Shown here piece by piece: positions 18,547 to 63,549 of a stretch of 64,000 nt of DNA. Source of the stretch: Epithemia pelagica (taxonomy: Eukaryota > Protista > Bacillariophyta). A program made the translations under genes and the position numbers. The stretch is from assembly GCA_946965045.2 (NCBI GenBank), contig OX337236.1:2232001-2296000 (forward strand), given 5' to 3'. Position 1 is the first letter of the stretch, and every line of letters begins with the position of its first letter. The notes under the pieces were generated by a model. That model was given only the letters and a program-made list of their open reading frames with translations, was not told the origin of the DNA and ran no database searches.

Positions 18547-19329
18547 TATTACAATTCTTTCTGAATCGTAGGGACATTGATGCTCGGTAGAGCAGACAAT
18601 CAGGTAGGTCACCAACCGATACAAGCTTCTCAGGGTCAGAGAAGCAAGCAAGTCGAAGTCTATCAGAAGGATAGTCGGGACACAAAAGAGGATGTGATAA
18701 ATGGTGATATTGTTAGATTGTGTGTTGATTACTACGATAGGTCTACGTGAAATGTTCGGTCCTGCCAAGGGTCATGTGTCATAGGTTCTTGGCGGCAACA
18801 GGTTTGGAATAGTTGGAGTTGATTCATGTGATGTATATGACATGTATATGTGGGCGGATAACATATACAGGGTCAACAGCTCTTGCTTTGGGTTGGCATA
18901 GTTGTTTTCATGGCGCGCAGCTTGTTGACAATTTGGAGATTGTGGGAATGGAAATATGGTCTCGCGTGATCGTGTGTCGTGCTTGGGATACTTAGACCGT
19001 TGGATCGGATAGATGCCGATAGCGCTCGGATGTCGCTTGGGCGCGCTCGATGATTTCGGGCGCGTACGCTTAGGGCGTTAGTATAATGTCCGAGCAACGG
19101 CCAAATTTATGTCCGTTGTAATACCGCACGACCCAGTTTAGTCTTGAGAGTGAGTTCGTCAATCTATTCTCACTTTTCATGATTTGCGAAGAAATATAGG
19201 TCGATATAGCGCGAAGCTAGGAAACATAGCTCGAAGCTAGAGGGCATGATGCGATAGCACGAGGCTATGTGACATGGGGAATCGATGAGATGTAGAATCT
19301 AACCACCATAGACGGTGAGAATTCTAACA
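18547..19329 (-). repeat. Copia 1 3' LTR (783 bp; TG...TA on the sense strand)
   Basis: Direct repeat of 26148-26930; no difference found by eye. Confidence 0.95.
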
Positions 19330-22300
19330 CTCCCCACAACTCGTCGTTTCAGCCTTGTCATCATTGGGTTTGTTGAGATCTTGAACTTCTCCTTTCCAAA
19401 ACAACAATGGCTTGAGCATGGGCCAAATAGATACGAAATCCCAATGTTTGCTAAGGATATCGGCAGGGTTGGTCTTTCCATCTTTCCAGTAGAATGCAAC
19501 ATACTTTGCTGCGATGGCTTCACGAACTCGGTGGTATGACAGAAGATGGTGTCTCTTGGATAGTATGGAGTGAGGAACGGTTGCATTGAGCACAACAGAT
19601 CTGTTATCTCCGTACAAGTAACTTCGCTCTCGGATAGGTACTCCAAGGTAGCGGAGAGAATGTCGTAATTCTGTAATCTGATCTATTGCTGTCCTTGCAG
19701 CCACAAACTCGGATCCATAGGTAGCAGTTTCCACCGTGCTCTGTCTCTTGCTGTACCAGTCAATAGGTGTTCCGTTCAACAAATGTAGAACAGCAGTGAC
19801 GGATTTACCAGTGACTATGTCATGCATGAGATTGGCATCAACATAATGAGTTGTGGTAACATAGCGGCCAAGAGGTGTTGGGCAGTCTTCAGGAATACGT
19901 TCACTTGCATTCGAATAGACAGTGCGAGTCCAATCAAATTCTTGGGTAGGAAGACTTGAATAATCAGGCTCTCCAATCCTAAATCTGATTGCGCCTTCTG
20001 GGAGATGTGCAAGGTATCCATAGATACGCTTGGCTCTATCAAGATGTCCTTTCCTCGGAGCAGCACGAAAGCGTGATAGCGTCATTGTAGCGGTGAAGAC
20101 GTCGAAACGACCAATAGTGATCACCCATTGGAGTTGTCCAATCAGAGTTTGGAAATGGCTAGTACCTTCTTCATCAAGGAGCTCAGAATCATCCAATTCA
20201 GGATGGTCTTCACCAATAAGAGGTGTTTTGGCTTTCTTGGGTTTCTCCTTGAAGATTCGTTCGAAAGTGTCCATCATCTTACCAATGTAGCGTCTTGGAT
20301 CTGCTACGAATGTTCCATCAGAATCCTTGGTGTAACAACATCCCAAATGGAAATCAATAGGTCCATCTCCTTTGAGTTTGAAGTTGTATTTCTCCTTCAG
20401 GATCTTGCAGATATTCCCAGGATCAGTAGAAATAATGGCTAAGTCATCAACGTATACGGCAATGTATTCGTAACAGTCTTCTCCAGGTGCTTTCCTCATC
20501 CAGATATCCGGATCTGCTTTGCTTGGTGAAAATCCCATGTCTGTCAAAACATCGAATAAGACATCATGCCAGCGTGCGCCTGATGACTTCAATCCATAAA
20601 GTGCCTTGTATATAATCAGGATGTGACCTTCTAATTCCTTGAATTCAGGTCCTGCGACAATGAAAATTTTCTCCCCTGTCAAGGCTTCCAGATATGCATT
20701 TCCAATATCTGCTCCCCATATTTCCAAGTCATTCAAAGTACCCAGGAATAAGGCAATGCGGAGGTTGCGAATGGAAACAACACCTGAATAGATTGTCTCA
20801 ACAGGTTCTTTTGTGAGATGTCCATCTGCGACAAGTCTTGCTTTATGTCGTCCATCATGTTTTACGTCAAAGACAAGATGCACACGTATCTTATGATATC
20901 CTTCAGGTGCATTGGATACTTTCCCTTTAATGAAGATGGCTTTCCCAAAATCCTTGAATGTCTTGTAGGACTGGATCTGTGACAATTCTAATTCTGTTGC
21001 ATCCTGCCACTTTGTGTTGCCATGTTGTTTATCAAGAGCAACAGCTTCCTCATAATTGCGTGGTACTTGAAATCCAAACTTATACTTGACGGAATGGTGA
21101 ACTTGTTTAATCCTTGACTGTTTGGCTGCTCGAATGAGACGTTTGCTTGTTTTGACATAACGTTTCAAATGCTTCCATCCAGGTTCGTTGAGTAAACCAT
21201 GTTTCTTTCCATAAATTGCTACAGTGATCGGATCATCATTGGCGATGAGTGATAAAGGTTCATAGGTAGTCTCCCCAGTTTCCCAATCAACAAGCAAATT
21301 ATATTTGCTCCCCTTGTAATCTGGATCAGTTGTGTTCAGTGGGCCTTGATGGGCAATGACATCCCTGAACCTGAAAAGATTATCTCCAGAGGTTTGAGCT
21401 TGGTTATCTCGTTCGATATACTCCATGAGTTGATTATAGGATATCATCTCATCAACATCAGAATTTGTCTTTCGGTAAATGTACTTGACACGTTCTTCCT
21501 GTTTCGTTGCTTCTTCATTAAGATCAATGACTCGTTTGATGACACGTGCACGGTGTCGCTCCCCATTTTCTTCTGTGTCGCATAGGAATGTGCGTCCTAT
21601 CATGTCGTCAAAATCGATCGTGGGCATTGGTTTGGATGGATCTTCACTATCACTGCGAATGAAGACAGTGTCAGCTTGCTTATCATTGTCATCCTTCTCA
21701 GACGAATCCTCCCCTGAAGGTCGATCCACACGTAGGTTAGGTGTAGTGGATTCAACACGGCGAACGGCAGAACGATAGATTATCTGGTTATCCTGGGTGA
21801 GAATTTTCCAAGTAAAAGAATCACCAACGTTGTGAGCAAAACCAACCCAGTGGCCAAGTTTCTCATCAGAAGAAGATGGATATGAACCGGAATTGGGTTC
21901 AGCGGGGTCGACACGGTAGTAAACCTCATCCCAGAAAGGAAAGAACAAGAGATGAGTAATGTCGGGTGGGCGGCCGGAGAGAGCCTCAAGAGGAGTGCGA
22001 CCGGAGTGGGTGGGTGATGACGTATGGTTCAATAAGTCACAGACATACTCAAGGCAAAGAAGCCAGGTGTTGGCAGGGCAACCAGTGGCATTCATGAGAG
22101 CGTTGGTCATACGTTTAACGGTCTGGTAACGGTTTTCAGCCTTATTCTGGTGTTGATGATAAGGTTCGGATCGATACTCCCCAATAAGCAAAGTGCGAAG
22201 AATGTCTTTAACCTTTTGAGAGATGAGAGATGAACCACCATCACTGATAAGAGTCTCCATGGCACCACGAAACCGGATGTTGTCCTGAAGAGTATTGACA

Positions 22301-25011
22301 AACTGTTTGGTTGACTTGATCCCATAGATATCAGTAACCAGAGTATCTCGACCAACAAAGATTTGTGCGACTTTACCGCCATGGTCAACAGCAGGGGTGT
22401 CGGAGAAAACCGAGTCAGTAGCAACGGGTTCATGGCGTCGAGGTATATTAAGGACCGGATTGCGAGCCTTGAAATGTTTCTTGAGGGTGTCGTGGTCAAA
22501 AGTAATGCTACCATTACGTGTAGTGTGCTTGAACGTATCGGCAGTAACATCTTCAGATTGCCAACCAAAGAATGGACGGAACTTCTTCCAGTCATACGCT
22601 TCCTGGTAACGACGGTGGACAGAGGCATGAAGTGTAGGATCATTACCTTCTGCGTCAGCATAGATAGAAAAGAAGGGTGCGTCGTCAGGTCCATGATCGT
22701 ATGGGAGATCCAAAAGGAGATTGAGGTTACAAACAACACGATCAGTGTACTCCCCATAGTTGTCATATGGATGGTTCGACATACTACCATCAGTCTTGAC
22801 GTGTTTCCAATCAGGATCATTGTCAGAGGGTGTGGGAGAATACGAATGGTCCAGAACACCAGGATCCCATGTGTCGGGTGACGTGAAGATGATCTGAGGT
22901 AAGGTATCCATGTCATCGTCGCTGGGGATACCCAAGGAGTGGATGTAGGCTAACCCATCCTTGATGTGAAGGGGTATGGCACGACCATCAAGTGTAGTGA
23001 TGCGTTGTTTACCATCAACTTTAACAGATCGTTCATCAACAGCAAGTCCGAAATGCTCGAATTGACCAGGAGCATGGATAGATAAGCCCTTCCCATAATA
23101 AGCATATTCATTGAAGATGCCGACAATAGGTCCATCATTGGTCTCAAACTTTGCGGCACATGTGACGACAGGAAGTCCAGTAAGTTCATGGTTATCAATA
23201 CCCACAATAGTGATATGGCGGCCAGTCTTAGAAAGGATGCGCATGTCAGAACCAGCAAGTCCTCCATTAGCACCACGGTCAATCAATTGATTCCCTGGTA
23301 AAGTAGATTTCCTGGAAAACAGATAGCGTGGAACATGTCCTGCTCGTTTATGCATGTTGGCTTTGAAAGTAACCTTCTTGCTCGTCTTGGACTTGGCGTT
23401 AGAAAGAACACTAGTCAGGTCAGTTGCCGGGTGATTGATATCAGTCGTCATGGCTTGGTTGATAAATTGTGTAACCGGATCTGAATCATCTGAATGCTCA
23501 GTGACTACGCCAGGTGAGTCGTCATCAGATACAACTTGGTTGGGATCAGGATCAGGTTCCGGATCAATGTCGAGGGCATGTGTTTGCACTGTCCTCGGTG
23601 TTGTTGATGAAGGTGCTTGAATCATCTTGTTATATTCAATGATCAACTTGCGATCTTCTTCAGAAAGTTTGAACCATAGGTCACGCGGTAGACTAACCTT
23701 GGACGAAGAGGATGGAGATTCAGATGTCGCTTTGGTGTTGTGGACGTGATACTCCATATCATCTTGTGAGGTTATGTCAGCATCTGTATCTTGGCCATAT
23801 AGTGATTCATGTTGTTTGACATGTCGACGGCGACTATGAACAGATGACTGGGTTGCTTGATCATGGTCATAAGCTGCGTCTAGAAGGAGACGGAAGTATG
23901 ATTGATAGCAAAGGGATTTTGCACCGGATTTGGTGTTCACCACATTATCCAAGATCTTGACTCGGCGGAGATCAGGTACCTTTTCTACAGCTTGCATGAG
24001 GAAGGTCATCCTGGTATGATCAGGGATGCGATCAGACAATGTCACTAAATTGTCTAGCAAACGTAGCTGCTCTTGAAAGTGTAGAAGAAATTGACGTGTT
24101 GTTCCGCGCCATGTGTCGTCAAGACGTAGATTGGAAATGTAGTTGGTTAAGCGGAGGACTTCTCGCTTTGCTAGGTCGGATTCGGTATGCAAAGAGTGTA
24201 ACTTCTGCAATACGGCACGCGCATCTTCATCATGTTCATGTTCACGTACATAGGCTCGACCTTGGTCAGTCTGAATGATACGGACAAGAACGGAGTAAAG
24301 AAATACTTGTTGCTCTTGAAAAAGTTCTTCGGCATACTCATCATCATGGGGTGGTGTGTATTTGAAATTCAGAACGTTGGATAGGCCTTGAGCCTTAGCT
24401 GTAGTCTTGAATACACGCCAGAATGAATCGTAGTATCGTTCATCCTTGAATACCTCATATGCAGTTGCGTCGCGCTTAGTTCCCTTTCTGAATGCTGTAA
24501 GGTCTTGTTGAGATTGGGATGCGGCAGTAACTGTGCTGACAGATTTCACAGATGACGGTGACTTCATTGGCGAGACTGGGACTTGGCTAGGTGGTCCCTT
24601 AGAGAAATCTGTGTTGATCCTCCAAGTGTTGAACTCTTTCCTCGTTAGGTTCATCCAGTCGCTATTGGATAGCTCGTCTTGAATTTCATTGGTCTTGTAT
24701 GTGGCCCAATAAGCCAAGAGCTTGATCTGCTGTCTTGTGGGGCCTTGTAGATCATGTGTCTGTTTGTTGACCTTGTATTGTGTCAGTTCCTTCATGGATT
24801 CCTCGGTATTAGTTTGCATATACGAGATAACATGGGTAATGTTCTCAAAACCATGGTATTTCATCCACTTCATTAAGTAGTCAGCCCTTTCTTTGGTAAA
24901 AAATTGGCAGACAGTAAATATGATGTGGTCGAATAGGTCTGTGTCCGAGACATTGTCTTGGTTATCTTCTCCCTTAGGAGTCGTAGGTGTCTTGGGTGAT
25001 TGAGGATCCAT
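19324..25011 (-). CDS. Copia 1 Gag-Pol polyprotein, 1895 aa
   Basis: Protease LIDRGANGG; integrase VATDS...LISDGG...NKAENRYQTVK; RT YVDDL; RNase H YVDANL...TYGSEF...GDN...DILSK. Confidence 0.97.
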   Translation of the reverse strand: MDPQSPKTPTTPKGEDNQDNVSDTDLFDHIIFTVCQFFTKERADYLMKWMKYHGFENITHVISYMQTNTEESMKELTQYKVNKQTHDLQGPTRQQIKLLAYWATYKTNEIQDELSNSDWMNLTRKEFNTWRINTDFSKGPPSQVPVSPMKSPSSVKSVSTVTAASQSQQDLTAFRKGTKRDATAYEVFKDERYYDSFWRVFKTTAKAQGLSNVLNFKYTPPHDDEYAEELFQEQQVFLYSVLVRIIQTDQGRAYVREHEHDEDARAVLQKLHSLHTESDLAKREVLRLTNYISNLRLDDTWRGTTRQFLLHFQEQLRLLDNLVTLSDRIPDHTRMTFLMQAVEKVPDLRRVKILDNVVNTKSGAKSLCYQSYFRLLLDAAYDHDQATQSSVHSRRRHVKQHESLYGQDTDADITSQDDMEYHVHNTKATSESPSSSSKVSLPRDLWFKLSEEDRKLIIEYNKMIQAPSSTTPRTVQTHALDIDPEPDPDPNQVVSDDDSPGVVTEHSDDSDPVTQFINQAMTTDINHPATDLTSVLSNAKSKTSKKVTFKANMHKRAGHVPRYLFSRKSTLPGNQLIDRGANGGLAGSDMRILSKTGRHITIVGIDNHELTGLPVVTCAAKFETNDGPIVGIFNEYAYYGKGLSIHAPGQFEHFGLAVDERSVKVDGKQRITTLDGRAIPLHIKDGLAYIHSLGIPSDDDMDTLPQIIFTSPDTWDPGVLDHSYSPTPSDNDPDWKHVKTDGSMSNHPYDNYGEYTDRVVCNLNLLLDLPYDHGPDDAPFFSIYADAEGNDPTLHASVHRRYQEAYDWKKFRPFFGWQSEDVTADTFKHTTRNGSITFDHDTLKKHFKARNPVLNIPRRHEPVATDSVFSDTPAVDHGGKVAQIFVGRDTLVTDIYGIKSTKQFVNTLQDNIRFRGAMETLISDGGSSLISQKVKDILRTLLIGEYRSEPYHQHQNKAENRYQTVKRMTNALMNATGCPANTWLLCLEYVCDLLNHTSSPTHSGRTPLEALSGRPPDITHLLFFPFWDEVYYRVDPAEPNSGSYPSSSDEKLGHWVGFAHNVGDSFTWKILTQDNQIIYRSAVRRVESTTPNLRVDRPSGEDSSEKDDNDKQADTVFIRSDSEDPSKPMPTIDFDDMIGRTFLCDTEENGERHRARVIKRVIDLNEEATKQEERVKYIYRKTNSDVDEMISYNQLMEYIERDNQAQTSGDNLFRFRDVIAHQGPLNTTDPDYKGSKYNLLVDWETGETTYEPLSLIANDDPITVAIYGKKHGLLNEPGWKHLKRYVKTSKRLIRAAKQSRIKQVHHSVKYKFGFQVPRNYEEAVALDKQHGNTKWQDATELELSQIQSYKTFKDFGKAIFIKGKVSNAPEGYHKIRVHLVFDVKHDGRHKARLVADGHLTKEPVETIYSGVVSIRNLRIALFLGTLNDLEIWGADIGNAYLEALTGEKIFIVAGPEFKELEGHILIIYKALYGLKSSGARWHDVLFDVLTDMGFSPSKADPDIWMRKAPGEDCYEYIAVYVDDLAIISTDPGNICKILKEKYNFKLKGDGPIDFHLGCCYTKDSDGTFVADPRRYIGKMMDTFERIFKEKPKKAKTPLIGEDHPELDDSELLDEEGTSHFQTLIGQLQWVITIGRFDVFTATMTLSRFRAAPRKGHLDRAKRIYGYLAHLPEGAIRFRIGEPDYSSLPTQEFDWTRTVYSNASERIPEDCPTPLGRYVTTTHYVDANLMHDIVTGKSVTAVLHLLNGTPIDWYSKRQSTVETATYGSEFVAARTAIDQITELRHSLRYLGVPIRERSYLYGDNRSVVLNATVPHSILSKRHHLLSYHRVREAIAAKYVAFYWKDGKTNPADILSKHWDFVSIWPMLKPLLFWKGEVQDLNKPNDDKAETTSCGEC
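19330..19337 (-). promoter_or_regulatory. Copia 1 polypurine tract GTGGGGAG
   Basis: Abuts the 3' LTR; the same sequence occurs at 56008-56015 in copia 2. Confidence 0.75.
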
Positions 25012-25278
25012 GGTGTTATTTGGTTGGTTCGATGTTTATTTAATGTGCGGTGTGATGTGGTTTATTTAATGTGTGATGTGATGTGAACCCGGATGTACCA
25101 CGTGTGCCACGTATGTACCACGTATGTAATACCCGGATGTGTGTTGTGATGTGCGACTCCTGGAAATTTCCGTTGATTTCGACAAATTTTCGCCGGGTTT
25201 CAACAAATTTTCGCCGAATTTTCGCGATTTGACGGGAATGTGTGGCGTGTTGTGCGACCAAGGGTACCCGGATGTGCG
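24986..25278 (-). promoter_or_regulatory. Ultraconserved 293-nt cis module spanning the gag-pol leader and first codons (copy in copia 1)
   Basis: Only 4 substitutions versus 61658-61950; repeated CCGGATGT, CCACGT, AAATTTTCGCCG and TTTATTTAATGTG motifs. Confidence 0.7.
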
Positions 25279-25331
25279 TTGAGTTTAAGTCTTGGAAAGG
25301 TTTTGAGAGGACGGGAGTTAACTATGAGTAA

Positions 25332-26111
25332 TTAAGCTTCGGTCTCTGAATCCTCACCCTCTTCCGAATGATCAGAGTCGCTTCCAGGCTCAGATGGGGC
25401 AGCACAAGCAACAGAAGAAGGGGTATCACCTTCAGCCAGGTGGTTCTCGACCTCGGTACGCAAAGGGTAGATAGTTGCACGATGGTCCTCGATGGTATGG
25501 ACCTCGTGGATGTAGGCAACGTAGTTATCTAGGCGTACAACGTTAGGAGGCAGAGGGCAAGTCGTCGTGTTCACGACGTGGATGGTATTGTAGTATCCAG
25601 TTGGGCGCTCGAAGGTTAGGAAGCGGAGGTGGACAGTACGGATGGGGTTGCCCGAGAGGGCGGCAAAGATGAGGCGACGCCTCGGAGAACGATGAAGTTG
25701 GTCGTTCAGACGGTCAATGTCTTCTTGGTCGACGATGTGGGTCACCGATTGGAACTGGCGTTCGATCTGGGTCTCCCCACGAATGATCTCGGGATCGAAG
25801 GTCGAACAAGTTGGTTGGCGGAAGTACTTGATATGATCAGCAATCAACCGGGTGGTACGACGGGATCGAGAAGGGACGAGCCGACGAGGCGGACTCGGGG
25901 GCCGAAGCAACGGCGCAGGGATCGGAGCGTGAGGCTGGGTTGGAGTCTCGAATGGATTGCTGTTGGAACTGTCGACGGAGATGTTGACCGATGTGTTGGC
26001 TGCCTTCGGCGTCGGCACCAGTTCCTGCTGCACCAGGGTATCGGGCTGCCCGGGATGCAGGTTGGCTCGATAGATCTGTCGTACAGGAGTGATAATCTCG
26101 TTAGTATCCAT
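25332..26111 (-). CDS. Copia 1 extra upstream ORF (ORF0), 259 aa, unknown function
   Basis: ATG just downstream of the PBS, same strand as gag-pol; homologous to 62753-61998. Confidence 0.85.
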   Translation of the reverse strand: MDTNEIITPVRQIYRANLHPGQPDTLVQQELVPTPKAANTSVNISVDSSNSNPFETPTQPHAPIPAPLLRPPSPPRRLVPSRSRRTTRLIADHIKYFRQPTCSTFDPEIIRGETQIERQFQSVTHIVDQEDIDRLNDQLHRSPRRRLIFAALSGNPIRTVHLRFLTFERPTGYYNTIHVVNTTTCPLPPNVVRLDNYVAYIHEVHTIEDHRATIYPLRTEVENHLAEGDTPSSVACAAPSEPGSDSDHSEEGEDSETEA

Positions 26112-26133
26112 GAAACCACAAGGAAATAAGCTT

Positions 26134-26147
26134 TGAGACTGTTAATC
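26134..26147 (-). promoter_or_regulatory. Copia 1 primer-binding site GATTAACAGTCTCA (putative half-tRNA-Asn primer)
   Basis: Abuts the 5' LTR; identical 14-mer at the same position in copia 2. Confidence 0.7.
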
Positions 26148-26930
26148 TATTACAATTCTTTCTGAATCGTAGGGACATTGATGCTCGGTAGAGCAGACAA
26201 TCAGGTAGGTCACCAACCGATACAAGCTTCTCAGGGTCAGAGAAGCAAGCAAGTCGAAGTCTATCAGAAGGATAGTCGGGACACAAAAGAGGATGTGATA
26301 AATGGTGATATTGTTAGATTGTGTGTTGATTACTACGATAGGTCTACGTGAAATGTTCGGTCCTGCCAAGGGTCATGTGTCATAGGTTCTTGGCGGCAAC
26401 AGGTTTGGAATAGTTGGAGTTGATTCATGTGATGTATATGACATGTATATGTGGGCGGATAACATATACAGGGTCAACAGCTCTTGCTTTGGGTTGGCAT
26501 AGTTGTTTTCATGGCGCGCAGCTTGTTGACAATTTGGAGATTGTGGGAATGGAAATATGGTCTCGCGTGATCGTGTGTCGTGCTTGGGATACTTAGACCG
26601 TTGGATCGGATAGATGCCGATAGCGCTCGGATGTCGCTTGGGCGCGCTCGATGATTTCGGGCGCGTACGCTTAGGGCGTTAGTATAATGTCCGAGCAACG
26701 GCCAAATTTATGTCCGTTGTAATACCGCACGACCCAGTTTAGTCTTGAGAGTGAGTTCGTCAATCTATTCTCACTTTTCATGATTTGCGAAGAAATATAG
26801 GTCGATATAGCGCGAAGCTAGGAAACATAGCTCGAAGCTAGAGGGCATGATGCGATAGCACGAGGCTATGTGACATGGGGAATCGATGAGATGTAGAATC
26901 TAACCACCATAGACGGTGAGAATTCTAACA
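26148..26930 (-). repeat. Copia 1 5' LTR (783 bp)
   Basis: Direct repeat of 18547-19329. Confidence 0.95.
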
Positions 26931-28493
26931 ACATCTGACAAGGCCTTGGAAGCTGTATCATCTTTGACATTCTGCTGATGATGTTTAATAAAATGTTTTG
27001 TCACATCCATATTGGATGTCTCTGGACAGGCACCTTCTGTAGCTATTCCTTCTTGTGGTGCTAAAACTGGAGTAGAGTCATTGGCATTCATGGGTGTGCA
27101 ACTCTCTGGAAATAAATTGCCCCGTACTGGTGGAGACGCCGTTAGGGATGTTCCATTACCTACTCGAACAGGATGAGTTTGCTGAGAGATGACACCACTA
27201 TTTGGGTGATTGGGAAGCATATGCGAAAGAGACATCAATTCACGTCGTTGTCGCAAATTTCTATCCATCTCTATGAGTGATAATGACTGGACAACACCTT
27301 GGAACATTGTCCTGGAAAGCATGGATGACTGTTCTCCAGATGATGCAAGATTCTGCATGAGAAGTGTCATGAGAGGGTCGACACCAGTAGAACTAGCAGT
27401 GTTGGCAGAGTCATTCTGCTGGTCTGTTTTGTCGTCATCCGAGTCTTGAGCATTACTCCTAGAAGAAGACATGATTAATGCAGAAAACTAACCAACTGAG
27501 TTCCCTGCTGTAGCTATCTCTCCCTTACCAGTCGGGTAGAGATGTCACGACTAATGACGAAACGCGTGATCCACAGCAGTAGAATGCCAAAACACCAATG
27601 GAATGTAATCAGTACCGGGAGCAGTTGTCACTGGGCTTGCCTGGCAAAGCTAATTAGGTGTGACACGCTTCCACTGCAGTCTTTAGGCTAGGTAGCTACT
27701 CGGAAGTAACCAAGAACTAGCAAGTTCTGACGGTAACTGTTCTTGTCTCCACACACCGGGATTGCCAGTCCCTAGCCCAATCTCCAGACATAGACAGTTG
27801 AGGAATTGTAAGGAGCAAGATGAACTCTGGCTACTCTGGCTGCACTGAAATCGTTCCAATTTGATGAATTCCACGCTTGTCCGATTGCAAAAGTGTAGAT
27901 TCTCAAGACGGACCAACCTGCCACAGCACAAAGATAGAGAGCCTTGTCGCTTGGCAGGCGACAGCAACAGATGCTTTGTTAGGAAACAAGCGGTGTGCCG
28001 GAGCACGCGAAGTAGTACCTGTTGAGTACCTTAACTTTGCCCCCCTAACGATATCCAGCCGGTCTGGCAAGGATCGCCCTCTTTTCAGCCTGTTGGCCTA
28101 CTTGTACAATCACGTACGGGGTGGGGGATTACACAGTCTCGCGGGGACTGGGAATTGGGTTGGCCGTGGGATTGGTTACCTCGGATATGTCCCCCAATTC
28201 AGTGGAAAAACTCACAATGCCAGGTATCTAGTTACGGGACGGGGCAAGCACAAAGAGGCCCAATGCAATATCAGGTGGGTCTAGTGACGCTTCTTGCAAG
28301 ATAAATTCAAAAATGAGCACGCAGCACACAAAAACCAATCGCACAAAAAACACAACAGATTTCTATTCTGTAATCTCACAGATTGTGAGAAGTAGAGGAA
28401 AAAATGGTCGGGATTAGTGCCTCAGGGGTATCTTCTAGTCCTTGAACTTGGTGTATGCTGTATGCTGGATAGTTAGAGTAGTAGTACGTAGCT

Positions 28494-28865
28494 GGCCCAA
28501 TACAACATCAGATAACGAGCTCACATCTTTTTCTTCTGTTCCTTACCTAGGCCCAATAAAAATCAGATGACGAGCTCACATCTTTTTCTTCTTTTGTGTT
28601 CCGGTGAATTCTTTTATTTGGCCCAATACATTATCAGATGACGAGCTCACATCTTTTTCTTCTTTTGTGTTCCGGTGAATTCTTTTTTTGACCCAATACA
28701 ATATCAGATGACGAGCTCACAACTTTTTCTTCTTTTGTGTTCCAGTGAGTTCTTTAGCTCACAACATTGGACAAAATGAAATTTTTCTTATGTGTTCCAG
28801 TGAGTTCTTTAGCTCACAAAATTGGCCAAAAAATCAGACGGTCGACAACTTGAACTCACAAAATT
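28494..28865. repeat. MULE right subterminal tandem array (~55-70-bp units containing GAGCTCACA)
   Basis: Four copies of G(G/A)CCCAATA...ATCAGATRACGAGCTCACA.CTTTTT...TGTTCC, followed by degenerate partial copies. Confidence 0.85.
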
Positions 28866-55249: not shown

Positions 55250-56007
55250 TGATAAACTTCTCTCGATTCAACAGGGGTTAGACAGATAGGTAGGATAGGT
55301 AAAAGGCTCGCTGAGCCGACAATCGAATCACCAACCGATACAACAATCCTCCACGGGTCAGAGAAGAGTTGCAAGTCGAAGTCCGCCGTGGGTGGGGGCA
55401 GTCGGTCCACTGATAAGAGGTTAGTCTTAAGATGAGTGTTAAAATGGTGATATTAATGATTGTGAGACGATTACTAACTAAGGTGGTTGATGGTGTCGAA
55501 GTCCTGGCTCTTGTATACGGCCATGGATCTGGTGTGATAGGTCCTCACTGGTTGGAGTAGACCGGCATTGGTGTATATTGAATGTATAGGGTGATGGATA
55601 ACATGTATGGGATGCAACAGCTCTTGCTTTGTCGTGGTATAAGTCTTGTCCTGGGCGCGTTGCTGTTTGCATTCTTGGATTTGTGGGAACAGAGATATGG
55701 TCTCGCGTGATCGTGATTCGTGCTTTGATTACATAGACCGTTAGGTCGAATCGTGGATGTGCGTACTCGGATAGTAGAGGCGCGCACTTGATAGTTTTGG
55801 GCGCGCACGTGTTGGGCCATAGTTAATATCCGAGCGGTCGCCGATAACGCGTGCACTGCGAGCATGCCGTGGCCAAATTTATAGTTTCGCGAGCATGCCG
55901 ACATTCTTTTCTCATTTTTAGGAAAATGTCATCGGATGCCATAAAATACTAGCATCATTCGATGAGTTGTAGGTTTCGCCACCTAGTTTTCGGTGAGAAT
56001 CCTAACA
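55250..56007 (-). repeat. Copia 2 3' LTR (758 bp)
   Basis: Direct repeat of 62792-63549; one mismatch seen (55423 A vs 62965 G). Confidence 0.95.
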
Positions 56008-59000
56008 CTCCCCACAATTCGTCGAATGAGGATTGTCAATTCCCTCATCACTTTCCTGGATTTTTCCTCTCCAGAATAACAAAGATCTGAGCATGGGCCA
56101 AACTGCGGCGAATTCCCAATGTTTGCTGAGGATATCAGCTGGGTTTGTCTTTCCATCTTTCCAGTAGAATGCGACGTACTTTGCAGCGATAGCTTCACGG
56201 ACTCGGTGATAGGATAGGAGATGGTGCCTCTTGGAGATGATTGAGTGTGGTGTGGTGCTATTGATAACGACAGAGCGGTTATCTCCAAACATGTAACTCT
56301 TCTCTCGCAGAGGGACTCCCAAGTATCGGAGTGTAAGGCGTAGCTCCGTGATCTGATCAACTGCAGTCCTTGCGGCAACAAATTCAGATCCATACGTGGC
56401 TGTTTCCACTGTGGCTTGTCGCTTACTGTACCAGTCCACGGGTGTACCATTCACAAAATGCAGGATGGCTGTAACTGCTTTCCCAGTAACCGTATCATGC
56501 ATGAGATTTGCGTCGACATAATGTATAGTTGTCACAAAACGCCCAAGTGGGGTTGGACAGTCCTCAGGGATACGTTCCTTGGCGTCCATGTATACGGTAC
56601 GACTCCAATCGTATTCTTGGATAGGTAAAGCTGATAAATCTGGCTCCCCAGTGCGGAATCTGATAGACCCATCAGGAAATGACATGAGGTATCCATAGAT
56701 GCGTTTAGCTCGCTTCAAATGACCAATCCTTGGAGCAGCTCTGAACCTTGATAGAGTCATGGTAGCAGGAAAGACATCAAAACGGCCAATGGTAATTAGC
56801 CATTGCAGTTGTCCAATAAGAGTCTGGAAATGCTGGGTCCCTTCTTCATCTAAGAGCTCAGAGTCATCGAGTTCAGGATGATCGTTAGCAATGACTGGCG
56901 GCTTTGCTTTCTTGGGTTTCTCATTGAACAATCGCTCATAGGTATCCATCATCTTCTCGATGTACCTTCGTGGGTCAGACACAAGTGTACCGTCTGGATC
57001 TGTGGTATAACGACACCCCAAATGATACTCGATAGGTCCGACTCCTTTGAGTTTGAAGTTGTATTTGTCTGTAAAGATCTTGCAGACAGCTTCAGGGTCC
57101 ATGGCAACGATAGCTAAGTCATCAACATATACAGCGATATATTCATAACAGTCTTCTCCAGGAGCCTTCTTCATCCAGATATCAGGGTCAGCCTTGCTTG
57201 GAGAAAATCCCATATCAATGAGAACATCAAACAGTTTGTCATGCCAGCGAGCACCTGAGGATTTGAGACCATATAATGCCTTGTAGATGATCAAGATATG
57301 TCCTTCTAACTCCTTGAACTCTGGTCCTGCAATGATGAAAATCTTCTCTCCTGTCAATGCTTCTAGGTATGCGTTCCCAATATCTGCTCCCCATATTTCC
57401 ATGTCGTTCATGGTTCCAAGAAATATGGCAATGCGAAGGTTGCGAATGGAGACAACCCCTGAATAGATGGTCTCAACGGGTTCCTTGGTGAGATGTCCAT
57501 CTGCGACAAGTCGTGCCTTGTGCCTTCCGTCATGCTTGACATCAAAGACCAGATGTACTCTTATCTTATGATATCCTTCTGGTGCATTGGCCAATTTCCC
57601 ATTAATGAACTTGGCTTTTCCATGGTCCTTGAAAGTGTTATACGATTGGATCTGTGAGAGTTCCAATTCTGTTGCGTCTTGCCATTTCGTGTTCCCAAAT
57701 TGCTTGTCTAGTTCCACTGCTTCTTCATAGGTGCGAGGTACTTGGAAACCAAACTTGTACTTGATAGAGCGACGAACTTGTTTGATCCTGGATTGTTTAG
57801 CTGCTCGAATGAGTCTTTTGCTTGTCTTGACGTATCGCTTGAGATGTTTCCATCCAGGTAGATCCAGCAAACCATTTTTCTTGGCATAGATGGTGACTGT
57901 GATGGGGTCATCATTTGCAATAAGAGATAGAGGTTCGTATGTCGTCTCCCCAGTCTCCCAATCAACAAGGACATAATATTTACTCCCTTTATAGTCTGGG
58001 TCGCTTGAGTTCAAAGGTCCTTGGTGTGCAATAACGTCTCTGAATCGGAAGAGACTATCCCCTGTCGTTTGGGCTTGATTATCCCTTTCAATGTATTCCA
58101 TGAGCTGGTTGTAGGAGATCATCTCATCAACATTGGAGTTAGACTTGCGAAAGATATATTTGAGTCGATCTTCTTGTTTGGTTGCATCTTGTTCCAGGTC
58201 GACAACTCGTTTGATTACTCGTGCTCGGTGGCGCTCCCCATTCTCTTCAGTGTCACAAAGGAATGTGCGTCCAACTAAATCGTCGTAGTCAATTGTTGGC
58301 ATAGGTGTGGATGGGTCTTCACTTCTGCTGCGAATAAAGACAGTGTCACCTTGCTTGTCAGTGGGTTTATGCGGCGACTCCTCCCCTGAAGAGATATCCA
58401 CACGAAGGTTGGGGGTAGTGGAGGCAACGCGACGGACAGCGGAACGGTAGATGATGACGTTGTCGGCAGTGAGGATCTTCCAAGTAAAGGCATCACCAAC
58501 ATTGTGGGCAAAACCAACCCAGTGGCCAATCTTCTCGTCGGGAGACGAAGGGTAAGAACCGGAGGTAGGTTCAGAAGGGTCGACACGATAGTAGACCTCA
58601 TCCCAGAAAGGAAAGAAAAGGAGATGGGTAATGTCGGGTGGGGTACCGGTAAGAGCCTCAAGAGGGGTGCAGCCAGAGTGGGTGGGAGAGGAAGTGTGAT
58701 TGAGGAGGTCACACACATATTCTAAACAAAGTAACCATGCAGAAGCAGGGCAACCAGATGCATTCATGATAGCATTGGTCATACGCTTAACGGTCTGATA
58801 GCGGTTCTCAGCTTTGTTCTGGTGTTGATGATAGGGCTCGGAACGGTATTCACCAATCAGAAGGGTGCGAAGAATATCCTTGACCTTGTGGGAAATAAGT
58901 GACGAACCACCATCACTGATCAAAGTCTCCATGACACCACGTGTACGAATGTTATCCTGGAGGGTATTGACGAATTGCTTGGTAGACTTGATACCATAAA

Positions 59001-61683
59001 TGTCAGTAACCAAAGTATCACGACCAACAAAAATCTGAGCAATCTTGCCACCATGGTTAACAGCCGGGGTGTCGGAGAAGATGGAGTCAGTGGCAACGGG
59101 TTCATGCCGTCGTGGGAGGTTAAGGATAGGATTCCGGGCCTTAAAGTGTTTCTTCAAGGTATCCTGGTCAAAGGAAATGTGTCCATGACGAGTTGTATGC
59201 TTGAACGTATCGGCGATTACGTCTTCCGATTGCCACCCAAAGAAAGGGCGAAATTTCTTCCAGTCGTATTGTTCCTTGTAGAGTTTGTGGACAGACGCAT
59301 GAAGTGTGGGGTCGTTGCCATCTTGATCAGCATAGATGGAAAAGAAGGAAGGTGTATCGGGGCCATGATCATATGGGAGATCAAGGAGGAGATTCAAAGT
59401 GCATACAACGCGATCGGTATACTCCCCATATTGGTCATAGGGGTACGTTTCCATACTACCATCAGTCTCCACAGATGTCCAGTTCGGTGCAGGGTCTTGA
59501 TGGGGGTCTGGATGGGTATGGTCAAGTACAGAAGGATCCCAGATATGGGGTGAAGTGAACACAATATGCGGATATTTATCCATATCGTCATCAGAAGGGA
59601 TTCCCAGAGATTGAATGTATGCAAGGCCATCCTTGATTCGTAAGGGCAATGCGCGTCCATCAAGGGTAGTAATGCGTTGTTTGCCATCAACCTTGACGGA
59701 TCGTTCGTCGACAGATAGGCCGAAATGTTCAAATTGCGCTGGGGCATGGATAGATAAACCCTTTCCATAGTGGGCATACTCATTGAAGATACCAATAATG
59801 GGTCCATCACTTGTATCAAACTTGGCAGCACAGGTAACAACTGGAAGGCCAGTCAATTCATGATTGTCAATACCTACGATGGTAATATGACGTCCGGTTT
59901 TGGCAAGGATACGCATGTCAGATCCTGCAAGGCCTCCATTGGCACCTCGATCGATGAGTTGATTACCAGAAAAGGTGGATTTGCGGGAGAATAGATATCG
60001 TGACATATGAACCTTTTGCTTGTGATCAGCAGAAGACTTGAACTTGACTTTAGGACTTGATTTTGTCGTAGAAGTTGACAAGATGTTGCTGAGGTCAGAT
60101 GCTGGATGATTGATATCTGTCGATGCAATAGCCTGGTGTACGAACTGGGTAACCGGATCAGAGGATGTATCGAATGGATCTTGTTCTGGTGCATCTTGAT
60201 GGGTATCACCAATGTTGTTGGCATCAGGATCAGGGTCTGGTTCAGGATCAATGTCAAGAGAATGTGTTTGGACCTTGCGTGGAGTTGTCGGGGAATCTTG
60301 GACGGATTTATTGAAGTCGACAATGATTTGCCGATCCTCTTCAGAGAGTTTAAACCATACATCTCTTGGAAGGCTGATTTTCGACGAAGTTGAGGACTTT
60401 TCGGATTGGATATTCGTGTTGTTGATCTGGTAGTCAGGGGACTCCACTGGTTCAAAAGGTTCATCCAACTGAAATTCATGTTGCTTTACATGACGACGGC
60501 GGTTAGACGCAGAAGTTCGGGTAGCTTGGTCATGGTCAAAAGCAGCATCAAGAAGCAGGCGGAAATATGATTGATAACAGAGAGACTTGGCTCCAGATTT
60601 TGTGTTGACAACGTTATCCAAGATCTTGACTCGTCTTAAATCAGGTACCTTTTCAACAGCTTGCATAAGGAAGGTCATCCTTGTATGGTCATGGATACGA
60701 TCCGACAGTGATACAAGGTTATCCAGAAGTCGTAGCTGTTCTTGAAAATGTAGGAGAAACTGACGAGTTGTACCACGCCAAGAGTCATCCAGTCGAAGAT
60801 TCGAAATGTAGCTTGTTAGGCGTAACACTTCTCGTTTAGCTAGATCAGATTCAGTGTGTAGAACATGGAGTTTCTTCAAGACGGCTCTTGCATCTTCATC
60901 ATGTTCATGTTCTCGAACATATGCTCTTCCTTGGTCGGTTTGGATAATACGTACAAGTACAGAATAGACAAAGACTTGTTGTTCTCGGAAAAGTAACTCT
61001 GCGCATTCGTCATCCTTGGGTACCTTGTAATCGAAATCAAGAACATTCGACAATCCTTGTGCTTTCGCAGTTGATTTGAATACACGCCAAAACGAATCAA
61101 AATATCGTTCGTCTTTGAATGATTCAAATGCTGTTGCATCTCTTTTGGTTCCTTTCTTGAAAGCAGAGAGATCTAACATGGATTGAGATGTTGTAGAGGA
61201 TGTAGTGGGAGATCGGGATGATACGGAGTGTGCAGGTGATTTCAGAGGAGAAACTGGGTCTTGGTTCATACCAGACTTGGTAAAGTCGGTGTTGATCCTC
61301 CAATCGTCATATTGGTCCCTCGTGAGGTTCATCCATGTAGCACGGGGTAGTTTTCCATGTTGGAGTTGCCGTTGTTGTAGTAACCAATATGCCATTAGTT
61401 TGAGTTGTAATCTTGTACTTGTCTGTAGGTCGTTGACTTGTTTTCCAACCTTGTATTGCATGAGATCCTTGAGTGTCTCCTCGGGATCAGTTGCAACATG
61501 GTCGAGGACATGAAGGATATGTTCAAAACCATGATGTCGCATCCACTTTTGAAGTGATTGGGCTCGTTCATCATTACAACCAAAGATGCCTTTAGTTATA
61601 TGGTCAAAGAGATCTTGATCGGTTATATGACTTGACTTGTCCTCAGAAGGGGTAAACGGTGTCTTGGGTGATTGAGGATCCAT
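56002..61683 (-). CDS. Copia 2 Gag-Pol polyprotein, 1893 aa
   Basis: Same PR (LIDRGANGG), INT, RT (YVDDL) and RNase H motifs as copia 1; diverged gag N-terminus. Confidence 0.97.
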   Translation of the reverse strand: MDPQSPKTPFTPSEDKSSHITDQDLFDHITKGIFGCNDERAQSLQKWMRHHGFEHILHVLDHVATDPEETLKDLMQYKVGKQVNDLQTSTRLQLKLMAYWLLQQRQLQHGKLPRATWMNLTRDQYDDWRINTDFTKSGMNQDPVSPLKSPAHSVSSRSPTTSSTTSQSMLDLSAFKKGTKRDATAFESFKDERYFDSFWRVFKSTAKAQGLSNVLDFDYKVPKDDECAELLFREQQVFVYSVLVRIIQTDQGRAYVREHEHDEDARAVLKKLHVLHTESDLAKREVLRLTSYISNLRLDDSWRGTTRQFLLHFQEQLRLLDNLVSLSDRIHDHTRMTFLMQAVEKVPDLRRVKILDNVVNTKSGAKSLCYQSYFRLLLDAAFDHDQATRTSASNRRRHVKQHEFQLDEPFEPVESPDYQINNTNIQSEKSSTSSKISLPRDVWFKLSEEDRQIIVDFNKSVQDSPTTPRKVQTHSLDIDPEPDPDPDANNIGDTHQDAPEQDPFDTSSDPVTQFVHQAIASTDINHPASDLSNILSTSTTKSSPKVKFKSSADHKQKVHMSRYLFSRKSTFSGNQLIDRGANGGLAGSDMRILAKTGRHITIVGIDNHELTGLPVVTCAAKFDTSDGPIIGIFNEYAHYGKGLSIHAPAQFEHFGLSVDERSVKVDGKQRITTLDGRALPLRIKDGLAYIQSLGIPSDDDMDKYPHIVFTSPHIWDPSVLDHTHPDPHQDPAPNWTSVETDGSMETYPYDQYGEYTDRVVCTLNLLLDLPYDHGPDTPSFFSIYADQDGNDPTLHASVHKLYKEQYDWKKFRPFFGWQSEDVIADTFKHTTRHGHISFDQDTLKKHFKARNPILNLPRRHEPVATDSIFSDTPAVNHGGKIAQIFVGRDTLVTDIYGIKSTKQFVNTLQDNIRTRGVMETLISDGGSSLISHKVKDILRTLLIGEYRSEPYHQHQNKAENRYQTVKRMTNAIMNASGCPASAWLLCLEYVCDLLNHTSSPTHSGCTPLEALTGTPPDITHLLFFPFWDEVYYRVDPSEPTSGSYPSSPDEKIGHWVGFAHNVGDAFTWKILTADNVIIYRSAVRRVASTTPNLRVDISSGEESPHKPTDKQGDTVFIRSRSEDPSTPMPTIDYDDLVGRTFLCDTEENGERHRARVIKRVVDLEQDATKQEDRLKYIFRKSNSNVDEMISYNQLMEYIERDNQAQTTGDSLFRFRDVIAHQGPLNSSDPDYKGSKYYVLVDWETGETTYEPLSLIANDDPITVTIYAKKNGLLDLPGWKHLKRYVKTSKRLIRAAKQSRIKQVRRSIKYKFGFQVPRTYEEAVELDKQFGNTKWQDATELELSQIQSYNTFKDHGKAKFINGKLANAPEGYHKIRVHLVFDVKHDGRHKARLVADGHLTKEPVETIYSGVVSIRNLRIAIFLGTMNDMEIWGADIGNAYLEALTGEKIFIIAGPEFKELEGHILIIYKALYGLKSSGARWHDKLFDVLIDMGFSPSKADPDIWMKKAPGEDCYEYIAVYVDDLAIVAMDPEAVCKIFTDKYNFKLKGVGPIEYHLGCRYTTDPDGTLVSDPRRYIEKMMDTYERLFNEKPKKAKPPVIANDHPELDDSELLDEEGTQHFQTLIGQLQWLITIGRFDVFPATMTLSRFRAAPRIGHLKRAKRIYGYLMSFPDGSIRFRTGEPDLSALPIQEYDWSRTVYMDAKERIPEDCPTPLGRFVTTIHYVDANLMHDTVTGKAVTAILHFVNGTPVDWYSKRQATVETATYGSEFVAARTAVDQITELRLTLRYLGVPLREKSYMFGDNRSVVINSTTPHSIISKRHHLLSYHRVREAIAAKYVAFYWKDGKTNPADILSKHWEFAAVWPMLRSLLFWRGKIQESDEGIDNPHSTNCGEC

Positions 61684-61950
61684 GGTGTTATTTGGTTGGT
61701 TCGATGTTTATTTAATGTGCGGTGTGATGTGGTTTATTTAATGTGTGATGTGATGTGAACCCGGATGTACCACGTGTGCCACGTATGTACCACGTATATG
61801 ATACCCGGATGTGTGTTGTGATGTGCGACTCCTGGAAATTTCCGTTGATTCCGACAAATTTTCGCCGAGTTTCAACAAATTTTCGCCGAATTTTCGCGAT
61901 TTGACGGGAATGTGTGGCGTGTTGTGCGACCAAGGGTACCCGGATGTGCG
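61658..61950 (-). promoter_or_regulatory. Ultraconserved 293-nt cis module (copy in copia 2)
   Basis: 4 substitutions versus 24986-25278. Confidence 0.7.
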
Positions 61951-61997
61951 GAACTCGGTCTTGTGTCTGGTTTGGTGTAGAAACTACGTAAAGTTAC

Positions 61998-62753
61998 TTA
62001 TTCTTGGTCACTTTCGGCTCGGTACTGAAGACGAGATGCGGAATCGGTCACTGTAGTGGCTAGTTCTTCAACGTCGTCGTCTTCCAACAAGTGGTTCACG
62101 TGTTGAGTGAAGAGAGGGTAGATAGTCGCACGGAAATCCTGGCAGAGATGGATCTCGTGAACAAAGGAGACGTACTCGTCGAGACGAGTAGTCGGGGTAG
62201 GTAGCGGATTCGTCGTCGAGTTGACGATCCAGATGGTGTGAAAGTAGTTGGTTGGACGTTCAAAAGAGATGAATCGAATACGGATGGGTTCCACAGGGTT
62301 GCCCAACAGGGCTTGGACAATGAAACGGCGTCTCGAGCACTGGTTCAAGAGGTCGAGAAGTCGTTGGATGTCCTCAAGGTCAGTCACGGGTTGGACGGAC
62401 TGGAAATCGATCTCGCGTTCGGTTGTGGAACGGATCACGTCGGGGTCGGTAGTCGACTCAGTCGGCTCGCGGAAGTGTCGGATATGCGCAGTAAGAAGAC
62501 GGCTCGTACGTCGGGTGCGAGTAGGGTTCAAACGGCGAGGCGGAGTCGAAGGTTGAGTCGGGATCGAAGGAGGCTGGACCACTTGGTCCGGGGTCTGGAA
62601 GGGATTCGGAGCACTGGCCTGAGTCGGGGTCTGTTTCGGAGTTTCAACCAAGGGCTCGCCCGGATGGGACACGGGTGGATGGAGTTCCTCCCCGCTTTGT
62701 TGGAAGGAATGAAAGATGTGTCGAATAGAGAGGTTGGAATCGTCGTGAGACAT
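61998..62753 (-). CDS. Copia 2 extra upstream ORF (ORF0), 251 aa from ATG 62753
   Basis: Homologous to 25332-26111 (shared NPF.TP, PPRRL, FQSV, RRR...AL.GNP, RF..FERPT, RLD.YV, RATIYPL). Confidence 0.85.
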   Translation of the reverse strand: MSHDDSNLSIRHIFHSFQQSGEELHPPVSHPGEPLVETPKQTPTQASAPNPFQTPDQVVQPPSIPTQPSTPPRRLNPTRTRRTSRLLTAHIRHFREPTESTTDPDVIRSTTEREIDFQSVQPVTDLEDIQRLLDLLNQCSRRRFIVQALLGNPVEPIRIRFISFERPTNYFHTIWIVNSTTNPLPTPTTRLDEYVSFVHEIHLCQDFRATIYPLFTQHVNHLLEDDDVEELATTVTDSASRLQYRAESDQE

Positions 62754-62777
62754 CGAAAGCTTCTCGGAAATAAACGA

Positions 62778-62791
62778 TGAGACTGTTAATC
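62778..62791 (-). promoter_or_regulatory. Copia 2 primer-binding site GATTAACAGTCTCA
   Basis: Abuts the 5' LTR; identical to 26134-26147. Confidence 0.7.
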
Positions 62792-63549
62792 TGATAAACT
62801 TCTCTCGATTCAACAGGGGTTAGACAGATAGGTAGGATAGGTAAAAGGCTCGCTGAGCCGACAATCGAATCACCAACCGATACAACAATCCTCCACGGGT
62901 CAGAGAAGAGTTGCAAGTCGAAGTCCGCCGTGGGTGGGGGCAGTCGGTCCACTGATAAGAGGTTGGTCTTAAGATGAGTGTTAAAATGGTGATATTAATG
63001 ATTGTGAGACGATTACTAACTAAGGTGGTTGATGGTGTCGAAGTCCTGGCTCTTGTATACGGCCATGGATCTGGTGTGATAGGTCCTCACTGGTTGGAGT
63101 AGACCGGCATTGGTGTATATTGAATGTATAGGGTGATGGATAACATGTATGGGATGCAACAGCTCTTGCTTTGTCGTGGTATAAGTCTTGTCCTGGGCGC
63201 GTTGCTGTTTGCATTCTTGGATTTGTGGGAACAGAGATATGGTCTCGCGTGATCGTGATTCGTGCTTTGATTACATAGACCGTTAGGTCGAATCGTGGAT
63301 GTGCGTACTCGGATAGTAGAGGCGCGCACTTGATAGTTTTGGGCGCGCACGTGTTGGGCCATAGTTAATATCCGAGCGGTCGCCGATAACGCGTGCACTG
63401 CGAGCATGCCGTGGCCAAATTTATAGTTTCGCGAGCATGCCGACATTCTTTTCTCATTTTTAGGAAAATGTCATCGGATGCCATAAAATACTAGCATCAT
63501 TCGATGAGTTGTAGGTTTCGCCACCTAGTTTTCGGTGAGAATCCTAACA
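62792..63549 (-). repeat. Copia 2 5' LTR (758 bp)
   Basis: Direct repeat of 55250-56007. Confidence 0.95.

Follow-up and report, generated by a model that had tools for sequence, protein, structure and literature searches.

A selected open reading frame upstream of gag-pol in copia-type retrotransposons of Epithemia pelagica

Ogre-type Ty3/gypsy elements carry an open reading frame (ORF) upstream of gag. To our knowledge, accessory genes are well documented in Ty3/gypsy elements and retroviruses, scarcely in Ty1/copia elements, and not in algae. Here, we analyse a 64,000-nucleotide (nt) window of Epithemia pelagica contig OX337236.1, a stretch of DNA to which all positions below refer. It contains two copia-type long terminal repeat (LTR) retrotransposons that each encode an additional protein, ORF0, ahead of gag-pol; element A carries ORF0-A, and element B carries ORF0-B. 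We propose, with a probability of about 60%, that ORF0 is a lineage-specific accessory gene of a copia-type (CoDi-like) clade, expressed by leaky scanning from one RNA and serving the element itself.

In rice tungro bacilliform virus and the badnaviruses (Caulimoviridae), accessory ORFs lie 5' of the capsid-protease-reverse transcriptase (RT) polyprotein on the full-length RNA, as they do in A and B, and leaky scanning takes ribosomes to the polyprotein across ORFs I and II, about 900 nt that are free of AUG (PMC5902531). The viruses and the two elements share some 0.9-1.1 kb without an internal AUG, weak upstream starts, and a stronger polyprotein start. However, the viruses, plant pararetroviruses with Ty3/gypsy affinity, are episomal and have a long structured leader with a ribosome shunt, whereas A and B are integrated algal copia-type elements with a single upstream ORF, for which scanning is a proposal. 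Among the titles and abstracts of the literature found, none describes leaky scanning in an LTR retrotransposon.

Drosophila elements of the MDG1 group (412, mdg1) carry sORF1 and sORF2, which, like ORF0, are in the sense orientation between the 5' LTR and gag and have a low ratio of nonsynonymous to synonymous substitution rates (dN/dS, or omega) (bioRxiv 10.1101/2025.03.14.642691). Both are part of the unspliced transcript that runs from LTR to LTR, and encode lineage-specific proteins for which databases hold no homologue (same source). In contrast to A and B, these are insect Metaviridae (Ty3/gypsy) with ORFs of only ~110 and ~70 amino acids (aa), and the sORF2 product is fusogen-like and transmembrane, while ORF0 lacks any hydrophobic segment. 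The additional ORFs (aORFs) of plant LTR retrotransposons are likewise conserved and of unknown function, but they occur overwhelmingly in Ty3/gypsy elements and mostly between pol and the 3' LTR, while ORF0 belongs to Ty1/copia elements and to their 5' end (PMC7264820). VANC of the VANDAL (Mutator-like) DNA transposons resembles ORF0 in being a fast-evolving, family-specific accessory protein, but comes from another transposon class. We found no sequence or fold similarity of ORF0 to Ogre ORF1, the MDG1 sORFs, env-like proteins, VANC, or badnavirus P1/P2 in Pfam, the PDB, 1.84 billion representative proteins, or Foldseek searches with a structural model that is itself unreliable.

For diatom CoDi elements, an "ORF1" upstream of the polyprotein ORF2 is tabulated, and left undiscussed there, in the Methods of Maumus et al. 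2009 (PMC2806351); this ORF could be no more than gag, in elements where gag and pol are separate. A and B, at 8.3-8.4 kb, are longer than the CoDi maximum listed in that source (8,062 bp), and come from another organism. The sequence-only reading of this DNA had considered an extra ORF unusual for copia. This has to be tempered for diatom copia elements, since the CoDi "ORF1" was already tabulated.

An accessory gene between the 5' LTR and gag-pol

Judged by its conservation and substitution pattern, ORF0 is a real accessory gene, forming a separate cistron additional to gag-pol. The features of the two elements are as follows.

18547..26930, minus strand: element A, full-length copia-type LTR retrotransposon, 8,384 bp, with a target site duplication (TSD) ACATC (5 bp) at 18542-18546 and 26931-26935
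26148..26930, minus strand: 5' LTR of A, 783 bp, identical to the 3' LTR (18547-19329) without mismatch (783/783)
26134..26147, minus strand: 14-nt motif GATTAACAGTCTCA at the primer-binding position of A, adjoining the 5' LTR; in B at 62778-62791
25332..26111, minus strand: ORF0-A, 259 aa, a single Met, T at -3 of the ATG
25012..25331, minus strand: spacer between ORF0-A and gag-pol, ATG-free, with stops in three of three frames
24986..25278, minus strand: block of 293 nt reaching 26 nt into gag-pol of A; in B at 61658-61950; 289 of 293 positions identical between A and B
19324..25011, minus strand: gag-pol of A, 1,895 aa, ATG in AACACCATGG
19330..19337, minus strand: polypurine-type tract GTGGGGAG of A, adjoining the 3' LTR; the same 8-mer in B at 56008-56015
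55250..63549, minus strand: element B, full-length, 8,300 bp, with a TSD ACACT (5 bp) at 55245-55249 and 63550-63554
55250-56007 and 62792-63549, minus strand: LTRs of B, 758 bp, 757/758 identical
61998..62753, minus strand: ORF0-B, 251 aa from its ATG, a single Met, T at -3 and T at +4
61684..61997, minus strand: spacer of B, ATG-free, holding most of the near-identical block
56002..61683, minus strand: gag-pol of B, 1,893 aa

The sequence-only reading had placed a sense ORF ahead of gag-pol in both copias (259 aa, and 251 aa at 62753-61998), and these coordinates are confirmed. ORF0 begins 33-39 nt past the 5' LTR, and another 314-320 nt separate its end from the gag-pol ATG. The two proteins are identical at 107 of 220 aligned residues (49%; BLASTP, E 1e-61), with gaps confined to the Pro-rich N terminus and a gap-free core, in agreement with an earlier by-eye alignment in which about half of the core residues matched. 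Identity between the gag-pol proteins of A and B is 78%. Locus L018 holds an intact copy of a third family, C (ORF0, 259 aa; gag-pol, 1,839 aa), whose ORF0 is 59% identical to that of B and 42% identical to that of A. Across the three families, a gap-free core of ~130-150 aa retains invariant motifs.

We estimated substitution rates by the Nei-Gojobori method and compared the proportions of nonsynonymous (pN) and synonymous (pS) differences by Fisher tests. The sense frame alone is free of stops among the six frames of the aligned ORF0 region, and pN/pS is lowest there; since pN is also far below pS, ORF0 is more than a chance frame. On the antisense strand, two ORFs overlap ORF0 (166 and 180 aa); we discarded them because stops interrupt both in the aligned region and neither shows a sign of selection. 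Between A and B, pN is 0.39, pS is 0.68, and omega is 0.30, falling to 0.24 in the core (aa 74-225); omega is 0.19 for B-C and 0.30 for A-C. The excess of synonymous change is significant in every pair (Fisher P = 8e-12 for A-B and 3e-22 for B-C; range, 3e-22 to 3e-11). Synonymous rates (dS) are saturated in all three of these pairs, so their omega values are upper bounds. An unsaturated comparison is offered by a decayed relative in locus L001 (81% aa identity to ORF0-A), for which dS is 0.28, dN is 0.095, and omega is 0.35 (Fisher P = 2e-6); the gag-pol pieces that survive in the same pair have omega of 0.17-0.22. Thus, by these estimates, ORF0 is under purifying selection, with omega of 0.19-0.35, well below 1, as expected had the sequence-only reading been right to suppose selection.

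ORF0 has evolved about four times faster than gag-pol (dN between A and B, 0.55 versus 0.14); the initial 150 residues of Gag have a similar dN. In ORF0, the closest families are B and C (dN 0.32, versus 0.55-0.62 to A), while by gag-pol the three families are about equidistant (0.12-0.15). The two modules therefore seem to have conflicting histories.

Copies of the elements bear on the same question. Both genes are intact in 13 copies in hand, and all 13 copies with an intact gag-pol have an intact ORF0; no copy in hand combines an intact gag-pol with a broken ORF0, and the stops in otherwise intact copies that would have spoken for a dispensable frame were not seen. In three A copies, ORF0 is intact and gag-pol is split into two to four called ORFs, and in three C copies both genes are broken by stops or a frameshift. 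In one B copy (L003), a single internal deletion has taken out the spacer together with most of ORF0 and the first part of gag-pol; L003 was considered as a third family and rejected on account of this deletion. The L001 relative has lost parts of gag-pol to deletions and has four in-frame stops in the aligned gag-pol pieces, with its ORF0 frame open over 244 aligned codons. The ORF0-C cluster at 90% identity has 15 members, and the ORF0-B cluster has 39. All ORF0-family loci fetched derive from one ENA assembly, ERZ21939226, of whose contig ctg1318l the window is part. The same insertion of element A, with the same flanking genes, occurs on ctg1318l and ctg1261l of this assembly (L015 and L016), which are probably haplotigs, and copy counts from the assembly may be inflated because of them.

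ORF0 is separable from Gag. An hhalign comparison of ORF0 with gag-pol gave a probability of 0.5%, so homology between the two is not shown, and the match to a gag-derived domain that would have undercut the sequence-only reading did not appear. Stops interrupt all three spacer frames in each family, and gag-pol is offset from the ORF0 frame by +2 in families A and B but by 0 in C and in D (the latter a sister clade described below). Together, these exclude fusion of ORF0 to gag-pol by frameshifting or readthrough. In the modelled first 570 aa of gag-pol, a confident small domain (aa 20-135) precedes a region built entirely of helices (aa 165-400); in gag-pol of A, a basic stretch follows at aa 539-568 (net charge, +10), and then a protease-like DRGA at aa 578. 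Neither a Pfam gag family nor a CCHC knuckle was found in gag-pol. Foldseek searches with the gag-pol N terminus gave nothing significant, the match of top probability being the Drosophila Copia capsid 8vvw_A (probability 0.57, E 0.39). A gag-pol alignment profile found nothing among PDB sequences, RT and integrase included, and Gag is thus unconfirmed by this route. The N terminus of gag-pol is Gag-like in its layout, and the Gag assignment, which draws on models, is partly inferential.

The protein encoded by ORF0 has a disordered, Pro/Ser/Thr-rich N terminus with an invariant NPF[EQ]TP motif, followed by an invariant Arg-rich patch that leads into a predicted helix. In A and B, it has an acidic tail and 10-12% Pro, and the maximum Kyte-Doolittle mean over 19 residues is below 1.0, which indicates no transmembrane-like segment. 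The layout proposed earlier from the letters (a Pro-rich N terminus, an Arg patch, and an acidic tail, without a transmembrane helix) is thus recovered. An AlphaFold2 model from a 19-row alignment is unreliable (pLDDT 37.3), and hints at three helices followed by strands in aa 82-206. Foldseek with this model returned a best E value of 1.1, which is not interpretable since the model is unreliable.

Sequence searches returned only the family itself. Pfam searches with ORF0 of A, B, and C and with the clade-D ORF gave only noise at E values up to 10, and a PDB sequence search with ORF0 gave no match. A word-indexed search of 5.8 billion proteins recovered ORF0-A itself, with 145 member sequences, and otherwise only the relative in L001. 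The six proteins recovered by a profile search of the 1.84 billion representative proteins are all copies from the ORF0 family, some whole and some fragmentary. Scanned JGI metagenome contigs held no ORF0 relative. By these searches, ORF0 is an orphan protein family.

The slot upstream of gag-pol is also occupied in a sister clade, D, from assembly ERZ25042306. Its gag-pol is ~60% identical in the integrase-RT region and 36% identical in the Gag region, and it forms a very large family (at least 639 protein clusters). An ORF of 186-187 aa (L019, 3398-3961; also in L020 and L021) separates the LTR from gag-pol in clade D. Its first ATG is weak, with T at -3 and C at +4; the protein contains one Met and has an acidic tail, and omega between subfamilies is 0.17-0.45. 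Profile-profile comparison (hhalign) of ORF0 from A, B, and C with this ORF gave a probability of 0.4%, and similarity is not detectable. L020 and L021 were entertained as new clades and rejected, being clade-D copies with a broken gag-pol. Thus, as read from these alignments, the layout is common to clade D and to A, B, and C, and the proteins have either diverged beyond recognition or been independently acquired.

The ATG-free interval and the spacer

Between the ORF0 ATG and the gag-pol ATG there is no ATG in any frame, over 1,097 nt in A and 1,067 nt in B, where 12.6 and 8.4, respectively, would be expected; none of 2,000 dinucleotide-preserving shuffles reached zero. These intervals are the longest ATG-free stretches of A and B, by more than threefold, and are bounded exactly by the two start codons. 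ATG density within gag-pol is 23-27 per kb. Of 14 copies of A and B that were checked, 13 keep the ATG-free interval. In C and in D, one internal ATG lies between the starts, and individual clade-D copies carry no more than one or two. No ORF0 protein contains a Met other than the first. At -3, all four (A to D) have T before the ORF0 ATG and A before the gag-pol ATG, which is embedded in the same sequence in A and B; G at +4 of the gag-pol ATG is shared by A to C.

The 1.1 kb without ATG suggests that both proteins come from one RNA by leaky scanning. We infer this from the combination of an ATG-free interval, a weak ORF0 start, and a strong gag-pol start, which is the combination described for tungro- and badnaviruses. 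The full-length LTR-to-LTR RNA would be bicistronic, and scanning ribosomes would meet the ORF0 AUG first, in a poor context (U at -3). Part of them would start there and make an ORF0 protein of ~255 aa; the remainder would pass ~1.1 kb devoid of AUG in any frame, and would start at the gag-pol AUG, where A at -3 and G at +4 make the context strong. Start-codon context would then determine how much accessory protein is made relative to Gag-Pol, as in the tungro- and badnaviruses. With lower confidence, the ORF0 protein would serve the element's own cycle, most likely as a nucleic-acid or ribonucleoprotein cofactor acting via its invariant Arg-rich patch and the helix that follows, while the conserved NPF motif and the acidic tail might contact other proteins. 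Such an element-serving cofactor is the role we favour, at odds of about one in four.

RNA of the conserved spacer block is no more stable than that of shuffled sequences (folding z, 0.07). A structured RNA element in the block was therefore rejected, and a spacer no more structured than shuffles is compatible with scanning. A search of the 5' region against Rfam gave no match.

A and B are almost the same across the 293-nt block, even though their synonymous sites are saturated elsewhere. This near-identity looks like a recent exchange or recombination between the families, and not like deep constraint. The 10-mer ACATCCGGGT occurs three times on the sense strand in the spacer of A (25087-25096, 25131-25140, and 25266-25275) and three times on the sense strand in that of B (61759-61768, 61803-61812, and 61938-61947). 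Family C lacks the block, but has three sense copies of ACATCCGGGT in its spacer (L018, 3838-3922). The 10-mer was found neither in the rest of the window (0.1 expected), nor in ~400 kb of loci, nor in clade D. These repeats look like a cis element. The block also has repeats resembling CACGTG, and TAAATAAA is duplicated immediately ahead of the gag-pol ATG.

Explanations for ORF0

That ORF0 is a chance open frame or a decaying captured host sequence without function would agree with its orphan status and low-confidence structure prediction. We consider this hardly credible, as pN is well below pS in four independent between-family comparisons, the frame is open in three families at synonymous saturation and intact wherever gag-pol is intact, and a non-element homologue is absent among the 1.84 billion representatives. 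It is very improbable, too, that ORF0 is an N-terminal part of Gag joined to it by splicing, frameshifting, or readthrough. ORF0 does lie directly 5' of Gag on the same strand, in an element where a Pfam gag family is recognised nowhere, but spacer stops in three frames of every family, the differing frame offsets, and the failed alignment to gag-pol all oppose a junction. Furthermore, the gag-pol N terminus already resembles Gag (its helical region, basic stretch, and weak 8vvw_A match), and splicing would not require ORF0 to be free of ATG. A more serious contender, still an unlikely one, makes ORF0 a regulatory upstream ORF (uORF), in which the diversion of ribosomes tunes Gag-Pol output and the peptide itself is functionless. 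The ORF0 AUG is the first after the LTR, in a weak context and upstream of the main ORF; the roughly fourfold faster evolution, the filling of the clade-D slot by a protein without detectable similarity, and the lack of a confident AlphaFold fold all suit a dispensable peptide. Yet omega of 0.19-0.35, a gap-free core of ~150 aa, and motifs invariant in three families do not, and length is held at 251-259 aa, while a pure uORF needs neither 250 codons nor amino acid conservation.

Alternatively, gag-pol might be expressed independently, from an internal promoter or an internal ribosome entry site (IRES) corresponding to the conserved 293-nt block. The near-identity of the block despite saturated synonymous sites, the three copies of ACATCCGGGT there and in C with none elsewhere in ~400 kb, and the CACGTG-like and TAAATAAA repeats before the gag-pol ATG are what such an element might look like. 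Neither a promoter nor an IRES would demand that ORF0 and the spacer lack ATG in all frames, however, and the block is missing from C and D save for the 10-mer in C, its RNA is unstructured, and its near-identity looks like recent A-B exchange; we regard this explanation as improbable, to the same degree as the uORF. A suppressor of host silencing, proposed by analogy with VANC, would fit the fast evolution and lineage restriction expected of a host-conflict factor, in families that were recently active (identical LTRs and many near-identical copies). However, ORF0 has no similarity to known proteins and nothing links it to silencing, and overall omega is well below 1, with no positive selection seen at this resolution, which leaves this role a slightly longer shot again. 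The sequence-only reading had proposed a selected accessory protein that might suppress silencing, chaperone RNA, or direct targeting: a separate selected cistron stands, and these particular roles find no support in sequence, family, or fold searches.

Several observations weigh against an accessory gene expressed by leaky scanning. The LTR of element A contains an ATG 67 nt ahead of the ORF0 start, and this ATG may be in the leader. T at -3 is not rare among host first ATGs (24%; purine, 67%), in a noisy sample of 46 long non-element ORFs. Leaky scanning leaves the conserved, repeated spacer motif ACATCCGGGT unaccounted for. Because the AlphaFold model of ORF0 is unreliable (pLDDT 37), a folded domain is not demonstrated, and no homology of any kind supporting a biochemical role was found in Pfam, PDB, profile, or fold searches. 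The sample of copies is biased, nine A copies having been fetched via ORF0. A broader proposal, which we put forward tentatively and with more doubt than belief, is that an algal copia clade has converged on the badnavirus strategy. It would have a 5' accessory slot translated from the genomic RNA, a gag-pol reached by leaky scanning across a kilobase without ATG, and fast-evolving orphan proteins, unrecognisable between sister clades, that would fit an arms-race factor (in counter-silencing or host interaction) better than particle housekeeping.

The elements, their neighbours, and what ORF0 may mean

A and B are freshly inserted copia-type retrotransposons. Paired LTRs and a 5-bp TSD are present in both, and the integrase core lies upstream of a copia-type RT in gag-pol (Pfam), as in Ty1/copia elements (Pseudoviridae). 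In gag-pol of A, RVT_2 covers aa 1365-1584 (E 7e-25), and the rve integrase core covers aa 899-952 with an E value of 1e-3 that falls short of the Pfam cut-off. The near-identical LTR pairs and the many near-identical copies are those of recently active families; between A and B, the LTRs have ~66% identity in alignable columns, with ~150 gap columns. An LTR length of 786 bp for A was rejected in favour of 783 bp, the exact repeat having been prolonged by 3 bases of the 5-bp TSD. In both elements the gag-pol stop codon lies inside the 3' LTR, with a 6-nt overlap (19324-19329 and 56002-56007).

GATTAACAGTCTCA is identical in A, B, and C, and the clade-D version has a one-base insertion. It does not begin with TGG. 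A search for a primer tRNA found no tRNA gene in the window or in 15 loci; GATTAACAGTCTCA may pair with an internal part of a tRNA. CoDi-A elements have a chromodomain C-terminal to the integrase (PMC2774666). In gag-pol of A, aa 1190-1300 (21112-21444, minus strand), located after the integrase, resemble a chromodomain by eye, which is a lead only: this region has no Pfam chromodomain match at E values up to 1, and the CoDi-A hallmark is to that extent missing.

Elsewhere in the window, a bZIP-PAS/LOV aureochrome-type gene (33467-34948, minus strand) has the LOV domain of P. tricornutum Aureo1a as its best solved match, and an aureochrome implies that the host is a photosynthetic stramenopile. 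Five host proteins matched no named relative at 90% identity or more, and the host is thus a species other than P. tricornutum. A class-C G protein-coupled receptor (GPCR) gene (29213-32341) and a carbonic anhydrase are also encoded. An ORF of 1,228 aa (42676-46362, plus strand) has tubulin-tyrosine-ligase and class-V aminotransferase domains, an unusual pairing if it is a single gene. Two tandem arrays were observed: one of ~70-nt units upstream of the class-C GPCR gene (28487-28831), and one of 37-nt units ~300 nt from the 3' LTR of element B (54683-54961).

What appears to be new here is a selected orphan 5' gene in algal copia-type elements, an ATG-free bicistronic layout, and an unrecognisable protein in the same slot of a sister clade. 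Accessory genes are a route by which retroelements gain abilities such as envelopes, fusogens, and export factors, and ORF0 would add to them a protein family without known relatives. A and B are young, high-copy elements that bear a sequence signature of the way in which two cistrons may be read from one eukaryotic messenger RNA. This makes a concrete prediction for transcriptome, ribosome-profiling, and proteome data of this organism or related diatoms. It also suggests a rule for annotating similar genes: a weak first AUG, an ATG-free stretch, and a strong gag-pol AUG.

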